Below are positions 44,596 through 48,809 of a stretch of DNA of 64,000 nucleotides, one piece after another (position 1 is the stretch's first letter; each line of letters opens with the position of its first letter). The DNA comes from Prasinococcaceae sp. CCMP 1430 (taxonomy: Eukaryota; Plantae; Prasinodermophyta): assembly GCA_013416795.1 (NCBI GenBank), contig RQSC01000015.1, positions 383,141 to 447,140 on the forward strand. The letters are read 5' to 3'. Under the pieces are notes generated by a model, which had not been told where the DNA came from, made no database searches, and worked only from the letters and a program-made list of their open reading frames with translations. The position numbers were made by a program, and so were the translations under genes.

Positions 44596-44862
44596 GCGCT
44601 CCGGACATACAGTAGACTATAAATGTATCAAGCATTTCACAGGATTGCCGTAGCGCCGCGTGCGAGTGTGGGGGGCGCCCTGCCCGCCTCTAGCTAGATC
44701 AGAGCGCAGAAGAGGGAGTCGTCTCGTTCGTGTGCTCGCTCTCCCTCCTCCTCCTGCTGCGCAGCCGCAGGAAGAGGAGGGCGGCCACCACGGCGGCGGC
44801 GGCGGCGCTGGCGGCGGCGATGCCGCCGGCGCTGTGAGGCGCGGAAGTCCTTGGAGACGGGC

Positions 44863-45056
44863 TCGGAGGAGGAGGAAGCGGTGGTGGTGGTGGGCTCGGA
44901 GGAGGCGCGCTCGGAGGGGGCGGGCTCGGAGGAGGCGGGCTCGGAGGAGGTGGGCTCGGAGGGGGCGGAGGAGGCGGGCTCGGAGGAGGCGTTGGGGGGG
45001 GCGAAGGAGGCAGACTTGGAGGAGGCGGGCTCGGCGGAGGCGGGCTCGGAGGAGGG
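44863..45056. repeat. 15-bp minisatellite (GGGCTCGGAGGAGGC-like units)
   Basis: Repeated GGCTCGGAGG core; reads as GSEEA on + and SEPAS on -. Confidence 0.8.
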
Positions 45057-45412
45057 CGAGGGCCAGCGCTGGCGGATGCAGCGGGGAAAGAGTGCTCTTA
45101 TTGGGAGCGCTTTGGCAGAATGCATTCGTTTTGACCTGGGCTGGAGGGCGAGGGGCCGACTGCAATTCGCACGTAAAAATGCATGGGGACAGCGGACGGC
45201 GTCGAGCGCCGTTATTATTATAGGGATCTGCGGCTAGGTAAAACGCATGCGGCGGGTGCGGCGGCCGGCGCGGGAATAAGCGCCTCGCGGGCGGCATTTA
45301 GGACCCGGGGGCGGAATTAAGGTCGAGGGGTGGGAATTAAGGTCGGTCCGTTACGAATTAGGATTGGCGCGCGCGCCGGGGGTGGNNNNNNNNNNNNNNN
45401 NNTGGACTGGAT

Positions 45413-45505
45413 ACTAGGGTCTAGGGTCTAGGGTTTAGGGTCTAGGGTTTAAAGGGTTTAGGGTTTAGGGTTTAGGGTTTAGGGTTTAGGGTTTAGGGTT
45501 TAGGG
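45413..45505 (+). repeat. Interstitial telomeric array: 6 variant/mixed units (ACTAGGG, TCTAGGG, TTTAGGG, TTTAAAGGG) followed by 7 perfect TTTAGGG
   Basis: Counted directly from the sequence; TTTAGGG is the plant/green-algal telomere repeat. Confidence 0.97.
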
Positions 45506-45544
45506 TCGCCGCCGCGCCGCGCGGCCGCCACGGCGCTCTTCGGC

Positions 45545-46213
45545 ATGGGCGGCGGCGGCGGAGACGCCACGCCGATGATCTGCATCGACTGCGGGTACAT
45601 CTACAAGGGGGACTTCTCAAAGGAGAACTTCTTCACCTACAAGTGCCCGACGTGCGGCGTGGGCAAGAACAGGTTCAAGAAGGCCCCGCAGTCGCAGGTG
45701 TGCGGCGGCCGCGCGAGGCGCCGGCCGGCGCCGACCGGCTCGGCGCGAGCGGCCGCCGCGAGCGGGGCCTACCCGGGCGCGCGCTCGGTCAAGGCAGCGG
45801 TCGTCGCGGCGGGCGGCGAGTGGCGAGGGACCGTCATCGGCGTGGGAGAGGCCGCGGCAGGTGAGGTTGAGGCCGAAGAAGGGCTGGCGATTGGAGGATC
45901 GGGCGTGGGCGGCGCGCTCACAGCGCTCTGTGACGCGGCCGAGCAGTTCGCGGCGGCCTCGAGGCTTGCGGCGAAGGTGACACAGACCTCCGACGGGGGC
46001 GCCTCCGTGCGCACCGCGCGCGCCGCGCACGTCAAGGGCGGCACCAACATTCTGAGCTTGCTCTGGGTCGACTCGGTGCACGTGCTCGCGCTCGCCGTGG
46101 CGCTGCCCTCGGAAGAGAGCGCAGCGCTCGCTGACACGGCCAAGGCCGAGGCGCGCCTACAACCCGTACTCGAGGAGCTCAGGGAGGCGCTCCTGCCGCT
46201 GGCCGAGTACTGA
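45545..46213 (+). CDS. Rubredoxin-like domain followed by an uncharacterised alpha/beta domain; gene model uncertain
   Basis: ICIDCGYIY...YKCPTCGVGKNRFKK (two CxxC). A possible donor (CAG|GTGTGC) lies at 45698. The upstream in-frame RRAAATALFG looks like the end of a transit peptide. Confidence 0.65.
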   Translation: MGGGGGDATPMICIDCGYIYKGDFSKENFFTYKCPTCGVGKNRFKKAPQSQVCGGRARRRPAPTGSARAAAASGAYPGARSVKAAVVAAGGEWRGTVIGVGEAAAGEVEAEEGLAIGGSGVGGALTALCDAAEQFAAASRLAAKVTQTSDGGASVRTARAAHVKGGTNILSLLWVDSVHVLALAVALPSEESAALADTAKAEARLQPVLEELREALLPLAEY

Positions 46214-46237
46214 GCGGCTGTGGGTGCGCCTGCCGCC

Positions 46238-47302
46238 ATGTTCGGCCACCCCGGCTTCCGCATGATGGACCCTGGCACGTGGACGCCGTGGCAGCAGATC
46301 GGCATTTCGTACTCGCTTATGCTCATTCAGCTCACGCTCTCGTCCTCTCTCATCCTGCTCAACAAGTGGCTGCTCTCGAACGCGGGCTTTCACTACCCGA
46401 TCATTCTGAGCAGCATGGGGATGCTCTTCAGCTCTGTGGCGTCGTTCGTGTTGGTCGACGTGATCAAGATCGTCACCGTGCCTGAAGAGACGCGGCAGGC
46501 GGCCGATGCGCGCTTCCAGCTGACGCGCATGAATCCTCTCGCATTCGTAGCGGCCATCACGTTATCTACTGGGAACTACGCCTACATTTACCTCTCCGTG
46601 AGCATCATCCAGATTCTCAAGTCATTTACGCCTGTTCTTACGCTGCTGTTGCTCGTCGCGCTGCGTATGACCTCGCCCACCCACAAGCTCGTCGCGAGCG
46701 TGAGCATCATCACCGTCGGCTGCGCGATCGCCGCGTGGGGCGAGATCGAGACCGCTGGCGCGACGACCCTCTTCGGGCTGCTCGTATTCTTCGCCAGCGA
46801 GTGTGCCGAGTGCTCTCGAGTGGTGATGCTCGACTTCCTGCTGCGTGGAGAGAGTGGGTCAAAGATCAAGCTGAACGGTCTCACCACCCTGTACTACTTG
46901 GCGCCGCTGACGTTCATGTGGTGCCAGGTGTTTGCCTTCTTTCTCGAGTGGCCAAAGTTTGCACAGGAATCTGGCTGGCAAACCTTTGCGATGCATCCTG
47001 GTATGATGCTCGTGGCGGCGACGATGGGCTTCGGTGTGAATCTCTTTGCCTTTCTCACCATCCAGACCGCGCGCGGGGGGAGCCTCACCTTCAAGGTCGC
47101 TCAGACGGCCAAAAATGCACTGCTGGTGTGGTTGTCTGTGCTCATCTTTCACAACGTCGTGTCGCCACGCGTCGTGCTTGGCTACGGCATCTCTCTCGCG
47201 GGATTCCTGTGGTACACCGTGCTACAGGCCAACAAGCGCTCCAAGGAGGAGGAGAAGCAAAAGTACGCGCGCGTGCCCTCACAGCAGGATGTTAAGAGCT
47301 GA
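46238..47302 (+). CDS. Sugar-phosphate/phosphate translocator (TPT) family transporter, intronless
   Basis: LILLNKWLLS..FHYP, GNYAYIYLSVSIIQILKSFTP, TTLYYLAP, GVNLFAFLTIQ..SLTFKVAQTAKN. The ATG sits in a GCCGCCATG context. Confidence 0.9.
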   Translation: MFGHPGFRMMDPGTWTPWQQIGISYSLMLIQLTLSSSLILLNKWLLSNAGFHYPIILSSMGMLFSSVASFVLVDVIKIVTVPEETRQAADARFQLTRMNPLAFVAAITLSTGNYAYIYLSVSIIQILKSFTPVLTLLLLVALRMTSPTHKLVASVSIITVGCAIAAWGEIETAGATTLFGLLVFFASECAECSRVVMLDFLLRGESGSKIKLNGLTTLYYLAPLTFMWCQVFAFFLEWPKFAQESGWQTFAMHPGMMLVAATMGFGVNLFAFLTIQTARGGSLTFKVAQTAKNALLVWLSVLIFHNVVSPRVVLGYGISLAGFLWYTVLQANKRSKEEEKQKYARVPSQQDVKS

Positions 47303-47481
47303 AGCCGCTGCTACCACACGTGCCAGCTTCTGTGCTCCCACCAGGACCTTTGTACTTTAAAAATGTCTATTGAACATGCATGCGGGCCACCGCCGAGGTA
47401 CCCTCCGCCTTTTCGCCGCAAGCGTGGCGGTCTCTGTATCAGGCAGCTTTCCAACGTGGCGTGGCCGGCTCTCGTCGATGG

Positions 47482-48648
47482 TCATGCGATGGCGAAGCGC
47501 CCAATGCGCAGAGCCACACGGGTAGGCGCGCCTCCATCACTAGCCGCATCGCCTGGCAGCGCGCGTGGCTCCAGGGCGCAAAGCGTCGCCTCCTGCACCT
47601 CGTCTCGATCTAGGCGCACGCGGACGGCCGGGGCGCGTCGCCAGCTCATCCCGAGCGCGGGGTTTTGCGTCTGGCCGGGAGCGCTGTCGCCTCCGCCAGC
47701 CCCGCCGCCTCCGCCCACGACGTGATTGGTGCACAGCACCGAGACTTTCGTGCTGCCCCTGCACGACGCCAGGCGCTTCATCGCCGCCTCCATCTGCGCC
47801 ATGACCGCGTGACCCTGGCCCGACCCCGCGCCGAGCACCGGCGCGAGCAGGGCGCCCGCGCTGTCCACCACCACGAGCTCCAACCGAGAGAAGAAGGAGG
47901 ACAGGGCGTCTGCTTCGGGCGGCGGGCCGCTGTTCGGATCCTCTTGCGACCCCTGCGCGCCATCATCAGCGAGCGTGCCCTCGGCGCTGGCGTTGGACGT
48001 CGCCACGAGCACTTCGTCTAGCAAAGCAATGGCCTCGTGCGCTGAGTGCACCCTGAACAAAGCGACCGAGCTCAGCGCGCTGCTCTCCGCTCGCCTCTCG
48101 GCGTCTGCAGCCGGTGCGGTCTGGGGTGGTTGCGGCGCCCGCCCACCATTGCGCACTCCCGCGAGCAGCTGGGCCATCCGTCGTGCCGAGAACGAGTTCG
48201 CAGAGTCGACGTACACCACGCTTGCGCCCCGCGCTGCGGCGGCCGCGGCGGCGAGCATCGCGAGCTGCGTCTTGCCTGTCGCGCTGCCGCCGCAGAGCTC
48301 GGTGAGCGCACCCCGCCGCAGCCCCCCACCCAGGAGCGCATCGAGCGCGGTGCAGCCCGTCTTCGCTCGCCCGTCGCCCAGCAGCTCGCTCGCCGGCCGC
48401 GGCGGGGGCGGCGCATCGCCCGTCGCCTCGAGAGCGCGCAGGATCGCCTCGAGCGCTCCTGCCTCTGCCGCGTCCAGCGACGCACCCGCATGCCTGGATC
48501 CCACGCCGCCCCCAGCCCCGGCGGACGAACGCGCCTCGCACCGCACGTTCGCCAGGGCGACGTCCGCGGCACCCCTCACGCCCCTCGCCTCCAGCACCGC
48601 CGCCTCGCCTGGTGCGACGAGACCCGCTGCCTCCATGCGGGCGAGCAT
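47482..48648 (-). CDS. RAD51D: RAD51 paralog D-like
   Basis: TGCTALDALLGGGL, Walker A GGSATGKTQ, YVDSANSFSARR, Walker B LVVVDS, CTNHVV and PALGMSW. Confidence 0.85.
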   Translation of the reverse strand: MLARMEAAGLVAPGEAAVLEARGVRGAADVALANVRCEARSSAGAGGGVGSRHAGASLDAAEAGALEAILRALEATGDAPPPPRPASELLGDGRAKTGCTALDALLGGGLRRGALTELCGGSATGKTQLAMLAAAAAAARGASVVYVDSANSFSARRMAQLLAGVRNGGRAPQPPQTAPAADAERRAESSALSSVALFRVHSAHEAIALLDEVLVATSNASAEGTLADDGAQGSQEDPNSGPPPEADALSSFFSRLELVVVDSAGALLAPVLGAGSGQGHAVMAQMEAAMKRLASCRGSTKVSVLCTNHVVGGGGGAGGGDSAPGQTQNPALGMSWRRAPAVRVRLDRDEVQEATLCALEPRALPGDAASDGGAPTRVALRIGRFAIA

Positions 48649-48809
48649 GGCTGCCGGCGGGCGGGCCGGCCGGCGCCGCCGGCGCCTACGCACAGCACCA
48701 GCCTGCCCCTCTTGGCCTCCACACGGCCCCTCTGGCGGTGGGCACGAATGGCGGGGGTGGGGGCGCCGCACCGCAGGAGAGCGCGGGCCCACTTCTCTAC
48801 TCGCAGCAA

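Follow-up and report, generated by a model that had tools for sequence, protein, structure and literature searches.

A candidate bicistronic transporter locus in Prasinococcaceae sp. CCMP 1430 and the probable misjoin that gave it a rubredoxin-like reading frame

Polycistronically expressed nuclear genes of green algae were first documented with Iso-Seq (Gallaher et al. 2021, PMC7896298), and mutagenesis showed leaky scanning to operate at the curated bicistronic loci of Chlamydomonas and Auxenochlorella (Duenas et al. 2024, PMC11291117). The described examples include the TOM22-like and REX1S-REX1B loci (PMC7896298, PMC11291117). The published medians are 40–183 nt for the distance between the two open reading frames (ORFs) and 291–357 nt for ORF1, and the 5′ untranslated regions (UTRs) of monocistronic genes are also ATG-poor, with observed/expected values of 0–0.47 (PMC11291117). 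Here we analyse a 64,000-nt stretch of contig RQSC01000015.1 of Prasinococcaceae sp. CCMP 1430 (positions 383,141 to 447,140, forward strand; hereafter the window), in which the initial annotation had placed a bicistronic or readthrough locus made up of a rubredoxin-like ORF1 and a transporter of the TPT family (ORF2). Our results indicate that the rubredoxin-like frame is in all likelihood a composite, and that the natural upstream ORF of the transporter, called ORF1n, forms with it a candidate bicistronic locus of the known green-algal class, which would pair a young orphan ORF with a TPT-family transporter. That both parts hold together, the composite ORF1 and a natural two-ORF bicistronic locus, has in our estimate an even chance.

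The ORF1n–TPT locus shares with the green-algal bicistronic loci a small ORF ahead of the larger TPT gene on the same strand, 24–50 nt apart, a seemingly weak start of ORF1n followed by a seemingly strong start of ORF2 (in a sister species) with no ATG between them, and a predicted upstream product that is a ‘pioneer’ protein without annotation, collinear with TPT in a second species. It differs from them in the length of ORF1n, which at ~500–530 nt exceeds the published medians, in an ATG depletion that lacks significance at this GC (guanine plus cytosine) content, and in that its pair is confined to two sister species and missing from the described conserved pairs; the single mRNA, an exclusive 5′ transcription start site (TSS) and both products are proposals at this locus. 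Upstream ORFs and long ATG-free leaders also resemble it, since there too an open frame ends tens of nt before the main start and the leader is ATG-poor; in contrast to these, ORF1n has ~170 codons, coding-type codon usage and amino acid conservation between species. The locus allows eukaryotic bicistrony to be tested cleanly beyond the model chlorophytes, and both species are abundant in ocean metagenomes. There appears to be a culture with RNA data, as the runs X1 and X2 bear the label of a named organism. If the bicistronic reading is true, eukaryotic polycistrony would gain a new pair of genes of recent origin, and perhaps also another algal lineage, bicistronic pairs could arise with young orphan genes, and the orphan would gain a testable partner.

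Composition of the rubredoxin-like reading frame

Read directly, the ORF1 frame runs from 45545 to 46213 on the + strand (222 amino acids, aa) and closes with the TGA at 46211–46213, and the ATG at 46238, in the context gccgccATG, opens the 354-aa ORF2, which ends at 47302. The two ORFs are in a common frame, (46238 − 45545) mod 3 being 0, and 45578–46237 is free of ATG on the + strand, the 663-nt gap being the longest N-free ATG gap in the window. On all these points, that is, the coordinates, the position of the TGA, the 24-nt spacing to ATG 46238, the shared frame and the ATG-free stretch, the initial annotation was exact. The frame itself, on the other hand, is assembled from the following elements.

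45511–45697, + strand: plastid-type rubredoxin-like internal exon fragment (CIDC...CPTC), seen in RNA contigs; the real gene continues elsewhere
45698–45747, + strand: first 50 nt of the rubredoxin intron; L001 and X16 contig 6 are colinear to 45747, the RNA leaves at 45698
45722–45765, no strand: 13-nt GC-rich repeat (CGGCCGGCGCGAG, 3.2 copies by Tandem Repeats Finder, TRF), which holds the breakpoint 45740–45747
45741–46213, + strand: 3′ part of ORF1n, 157 codons and TGA, 99% identical in L002–L004; the natural ORF has ~170 codons, with its start outside the window

When ORF1 was compared with Pfam, solely the first 45 residues scored, as a sub-threshold match of the rubredoxin type (zinc knuckles): 15.7 against a cut-off of 23 and 21.8 against one of 26.5 (PF00301/PF21349), with both the CIDC and the CPTC knuckle present. 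The homologues, which include a Bathycoccus protein and P0001 (93% identical), are 123–184-aa proteins with N-terminal presequences, and they align to residues ~10–65 of ORF1 only; homologues of this rubredoxin part carry precomputed PF00301/PF21349 matches. Like the small plastid-targeted rubredoxin-like proteins of green-lineage algae (such as P0003, a 177-aa protein of Bathycoccus prasinos), to which it is 61–94% identical, the segment 45572–45697 encodes the CxxC...CxxC knuckle pair, but in contrast to these proteins, the window has an internal exon fragment only, without presequence or C-terminal exon.

The RNA of this gene was found in X1, a culture data set, which was taken as RNA since it is spliced relative to the DNA. 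The 555-nt X1 contig (record 1) matches 45511–45698 with 0 mismatches and then continues with GGAACTACTACGGCGGCATGG...; past 45698 the run-on reads GGAACTACTACGG..., and the metatranscriptome X4 gives the identical run-on. The rubredoxin exon ends at 45697 with the donor CAG/GTGTGC (the slash marks the boundary), and the next exon would read ...QSQ/GNYYGGMAAA. This next exon is absent from 45508–48600 and from the whole 64-kb window. On the other side, 5′ of 45511, the X1 RNA reads CGACCCGATGGCGTTCTCGGTGGGGAT instead of the telomere-like array that lies there in the scaffold, and these letters are absent anywhere in the window. None of the other exons of the complete rubredoxin-like gene is in the 64-kb window, so the gene is either located elsewhere or absent from the assembly.

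The DNA contigs part from the window a little further to the right. In X16, a set of long DNA-like contigs of the same organism, contig 6 covers 45508–45747 and is then unlike the window, and contig 8 (17.4 kb) covers 45741–48600 and is unlike the window left of 45741. L001, the genomic rubredoxin locus of a close relative, is ~96% identical over 45537–45747 only, including the 50 nt of the intron, and then diverges, and L002, a Tara Oceans metagenome scaffold, is 98.9% identical over ~45729–48674 with unrelated DNA left of 45740. At the breakpoint 45740–45747, 340 nt from a gap of N in the scaffold, the window thus stops matching both natural loci. Among the public contigs aligned to 45508–48600, none covers 45699–45831 as RNA except for one 21-nt repeat match, and the sequence that naturally flanks the TPT locus on its left was searched for within the window and not found.

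Codons 1–51 of ORF1 correspond to the exon and codons 52–67 to the intron of the rubredoxin-like gene. We concluded that the 222-aa ORF1 is almost certainly not one gene but a composite of the exon 45545–45697, the intron 45698–45747 and the foreign locus 45741–46213, the frame of which is open by chance because stop codons are rare at ~72% GC. The continuous rubredoxin-like coding sequence of the initial annotation could not be upheld, as the RNA leaves it at 45698 and the DNA contigs part at 45740–45747, and the same applies to the pairing of rubredoxin with TPT: the rubredoxin piece comes from another spliced gene, is joined to TPT in this scaffold only and is unrelated to the TPT locus.

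Given the unclosed N gap next to this stretch, the join is likely a product of gap filling or an assembly misjoin; a real, strain-specific rearrangement is less likely. If it were real, a rubredoxin-domain 222-aa ORF would truly precede TPT in this strain, the two forming a bicistron or a readthrough fusion. The scaffold is contiguous and free of N from 45403 to 47302, its frame is open and common with TPT, and the 7-nt microhomology at the junction also fits a genuine non-homologous join. Such a rubredoxin–TPT arrangement is nevertheless very improbable, as the junction occurs in no independent data set, the stretch adjoins the N gap and the telomere-like array, the fragment lacks its gene's own start and presequence, the RNA is spliced at 45697/8, so a transcript would not use 45698 onward as codons, and the common frame is not kept in the sister species. 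A misjoin beside a gap in a scaffolded genome of ~70% GC has here given a plausible 222-aa ‘domain fusion’ that is misleading for annotation, and the spurious ORF1 would mislead comparative claims on a rubredoxin–transporter link.

The real rubredoxin-like gene is spliced and well expressed (X1 contig depth ~50); the N-terminus deduced from the RNA is MAFSVGM..., and in the relative it is found at L001 924–1316.

The natural upstream ORF and its conservation

Three wild, near-identical contigs (L002–L004) match the window from 45741 onward to the right, and in each of them the identical frame is open until the TGA, 24 nt ahead of the TPT ATG. The further elements of this locus are as follows.

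46214–46237, + strand: inter-ORF spacer of 24 nt, in which strains differ by 2 single-nucleotide polymorphisms (SNPs); the sister species has 50 nt
46238–47302, + strand: TPT/NST-family transporter (ORF2), 354 aa, no intron; Pfam PF03151 with 6e-20; RNA contigs colinear
45832–47366, + strand: single unspliced RNA contig (X1 record 3) with 379 nt of ORF1n, the TGA, the spacer, TPT and a 64-nt 3′ UTR

In the sister species, 8 contigs carry a 176-codon ATG-started ORF1, a TGA, the 50-nt spacer, TPT and a convergent Rad51-family gene, and in the longest of them (L005) the two start codons are the sole ATGs in 920 nt through the TPT start. The layout there consists of a short ATG-free leader, a seemingly weak ORF1 start, no further ATG, the 50-nt spacer and a seemingly strong TPT start. 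The collinearity of ORF1n and TPT, and its conservation in the sister species, is a direct observation. As for the linkage in relatives, which the initial annotation had suggested to look at, the pair is kept in this one sister species and is absent from the transcripts of the 55%-identical TPT orthologues.

Several properties of ORF1n are those of a coding sequence. The proteins of the two species are 34% identical in a full alignment (BLASTP, 37% over 59 aa, E = 6e-4, or 2e-3 in a rerun), and the similarity is confined to the ORF frame, the DNA being without colinear similarity. The GC content by codon position is 0.76/0.61/0.85 and 0.86/0.66/0.87 in the two species, as compared with flat values of 0.65–0.71 in the sister's non-coding upstream region. 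A log-likelihood of codon usage, with the neighbouring genes as training set, was best of the six frames in both species (+0.24 and +0.10 bits/codon) and negative in all non-coding controls; positive scores were obtained in the ORF1n frame only, save a near-zero antisense frame in this species. On these sequence-based grounds we consider ORF1n probably a real coding sequence. The population variation of the sister species (5 variable sites in ORF1 and 1 in TPT) is too small for a ratio of nonsynonymous to synonymous substitution rates (dN/dS).

Relatives of ORF1n were sought with a word-indexed search and, exhaustively, with a profile run against 1.84 billion representatives; both gave only the two self clusters, so ORF1n is an orphan restricted to the lineage of the two sister species. 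Against Pfam (E ≤ 10), NCBIfam and PDB sequences nothing usable was found, the only match being the sub-threshold ‘SCO4983 family’ (E = 0.047). Hints of a fold came from other sources: the top feature-based Atlas cluster for ORF1n carries Robl_LC7 (score 0.90), and ~45 of the 50 best rows of a Foldseek comparison with PDB were roadblock, MglB, LAMTOR or LC7 proteins, the best match, 3kye, having E = 4e-3 and a template modelling (TM) score of 0.23–0.31 on a model with a predicted local distance difference test (pLDDT) value of 45. The predicted order of helix, strand(s), helix, three strands and C-terminal helix is like that of the Roadblock/LC7–MglB–LAMTOR proteins (PF03259); unlike members of this superfamily, ORF1n has no Pfam or PDB sequence match, and its Foldseek values are E 4e-3 or worse and TM 0.2–0.35. 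The fold of ORF1n may thus be roadblock/LC7-like according to the models, which is a lead and not membership.

The 5′ end of ORF1n was not recovered for this species: scans of metagenome contigs with an exact ORF1 49-mer and with a TPT profile gave nothing. Left of the 13-nt repeat, L002 (1–50) encodes SPSPPSS... in the ORF frame and L003 (1–16) an Ala run, and the N-terminal part of ORF1n is possibly low in complexity and polymorphic, or else a place where assembly generally runs into trouble. In the sister species, a (CACG)n/(CA)n microsatellite (L005 93–200) lies 140–250 nt upstream of the ORF1 ATG, and short-read contigs including L008–L010 break there. A 63-nt in-frame intron at 45861–45923 (GTGAGG...CACAG), suggested by a dip of GC at third codon positions (GC3), was ruled out by the colinear X1 RNA contig.

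Transcription and proposed translation of the ORF1n–TPT pair

The unspliced X1 contig crosses the stop codon of ORF1n, the spacer and the TPT start, so at the level of contigs at least 379 nt of ORF1n are transcribed contiguously with TPT. Removal of the TGA by splicing, which the initial annotation had considered, is contradicted by this contig, which retains the TGA. The core of the bicistronic locus proposed there, two ORFs too closely spaced for separate transcription units, held up, but with the orphan ORF1n as upstream partner instead of a rubredoxin. In the most likely mechanism, suggested by the known loci, one mRNA would carry both ORF1n and TPT, part of the scanning ribosomes would initiate at the weak-context ORF1n AUG, and the others would bypass it and, as no further AUG follows in any frame, initiate at the strong-context TPT AUG, so that both ORFs would be translated via leaky scanning. 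Assessed with the general purine(−3)/G(+4) rule, from which the species' own consensus may differ, the start contexts would fit such a scheme: the sister ORF1 starts with tgtgcATGc (T at −3, C at +4), and TPT with cagccATGg in the sister species (G at −3, G at +4) and gccgccATGt in the window (G at −3). For a true bicistronic mRNA with leaky scanning at this locus we see a chance slightly short of even. The more specific proposal, that leaky scanning on one nuclear mRNA yields both a lineage-restricted, roadblock-like small protein and an NST/TPT membrane transporter in this marine picoalga of high GC content and in its sister species, is tentative and would have to be called doubtful at present; if true, it would hint that a regulatory module of the roadblock type and a transporter are functionally connected.

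Translation of a fusion protein by TGA readthrough, also considered in the initial annotation, was ruled out, since the common frame is not kept in the sister species, where the offset between the ORF1 and TPT starts is 581 nt (mod 3 = 2) and the two ORFs lie in different frames. The RNA contig, as mentioned, retains the TGA, and the inter-ORF spacer differs in length between the species and carries SNPs.

The ATG-free state of the region, which had been put forward as a signature of polycistrony, turned out not to be exceptional. A mononucleotide shuffle of the 660 nt between 45578 and 46237 gave 5.3 expected ATGs and a P of none of 0.005; with a first-order Markov null, however, the true TPT-locus part has 1.7–2.6 expected ATGs (P(0) = 0.07–0.17) and the sister species 1.3 (P(0) = 0.27), and further ATG-free gaps of 625, 594 and 567 nt occur in the window.

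Several observations weigh against the bicistronic reading. The ATG depletion is not significant at the local GC content of 74–79%. The X1 contig begins at 45832, downstream of where ORF1n must start, the TPT contig of X2, a second RNA-like set of the same organism, begins at 46229, 9 nt before the ATG, and contigs across two genes do not establish a single transcript. No start codon of ORF1n was identified in this species, the 50 nt upstream in L002 showing an in-frame TGA and an other-frame ATG, and L003 differs from L002 in its first 16 nt. ORF1n has no relatives beyond the two sister species, its AlphaFold models are poor (pLDDT 45 and 43 in two runs), and the TPT orthologues at 55% identity (transcript-like contigs, GC 52%) have no upstream ORF.

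These data can be read in two other ways. The two genes could form separate, overlapping transcription units, with TPT transcribed from a start inside or just after ORF1n, in which case no AUG bypass would be needed. The beginning of the X2 contig at 46229 could be such an internal TSS, as 45508–46228 is uncovered in X2 despite a TPT depth of 24; the X1 contig likewise does not begin at the ORF1n start, GC content alone accounts for the ATG-free state, and the genome is compact, with the 3′ ends of TPT and the Rad51-family gene 180 nt apart. But a spacer of 24–50 nt in two species is too small for a 3′ UTR and a promoter, one X1 contig crosses the stop, spacer and start, and X2 also lacks the well-expressed rubredoxin exon, so its coverage is patchy; elsewhere, too, contigs break at GC-rich repeats, for example, at 48240–48399. 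On balance, separate units are rather unlikely.

Alternatively, ORF1n might be untranslated and represent the long, GC-rich and ATG-free 5′ leader of a monocistronic TPT mRNA, its open frame resulting from the scarcity of stop codons. Stop-free runs of ~170 codons are common at 74–79% GC and many overlapping ORFs are present in the window, and this reading would also be consistent with the missing in-frame ATG and the in-frame TGA just upstream in L002, with the restriction to two sister species and with the lack of a Pfam match and the pLDDT of 43–45. It is hard to reconcile, however, with the amino acid similarity in this frame only, while the DNA is no longer alignable, with the coding-like GC3 periodicity and codon-usage score, best of six frames and negative in the non-coding flanks, with the clean ATG-to-TGA ORF of the sister species, and with weak fold matches that fall consistently in one superfamily. 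We regard an untranslated leader as improbable.

The transporter and the surrounding sequence

The identification of ORF2 as a TPT transporter was borne out: PF03151 scored 72.2 bits against a gathering cut-off of 30, over profile positions 12–290 of 291. With TIGR00817 the score was 47.9 vs 317.9, so ORF2 is not an equivalog of the plastid triose-phosphate/phosphoenolpyruvate translocator. The closest orthologue is P0008 of the sister species (70% identical), the others being 55% identical. In 3 of 4 contigs of the latter (L013–L015, Joint Genome Institute, JGI) the transporter is lengthened at its N-terminus by a hydrophobic, signal-peptide-like stretch, MARCVVAALRILLLWSCC..., that begins at an upstream in-frame ATG and was overlooked by the gene caller; this hints that these orthologues may come from organisms with secretory or complex-plastid routing of the transporter.

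The sequence to the left and right of the locus contains three further elements.

45386–45402, no strand: scaffold gap of 17 N, directly left of the suspect stretch
45403–45506, + strand: telomere-like array (TTTAGGG/TCTAGGG)n; TRF, period 7, 12.9 copies at 45415–45506
47482–48792, − strand: convergent Rad51-family gene; the RNA contig ends at 47416, and the synteny is kept in the sister species

The G-rich strand of the array points toward the right-hand gene, whereas a chromosome end capping that side would have the other polarity. As it is missing from the RNA of the neighbouring rubredoxin-like gene, the array is probably part of the same local misassembly, or the contig end of the left-hand sequence. 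Upstream of the gap there is a 15-nt imperfect tandem repeat (GGAGGCGGGCTCGGA, ~13 copies, 44853–45055), which gives rise to long low-complexity ORFs on both strands. On the right, the 3′ ends of TPT and the Rad51-family gene are separated by the 180 nt of 47303–47482. The X1 RNA contigs stop at 47366 and 47416, leaving ~50 nt uncovered, and in X2 both contigs abut at 47301–47306, which suggests that the 3′ ends of the two genes are longer or overlapping in the X2 data set.

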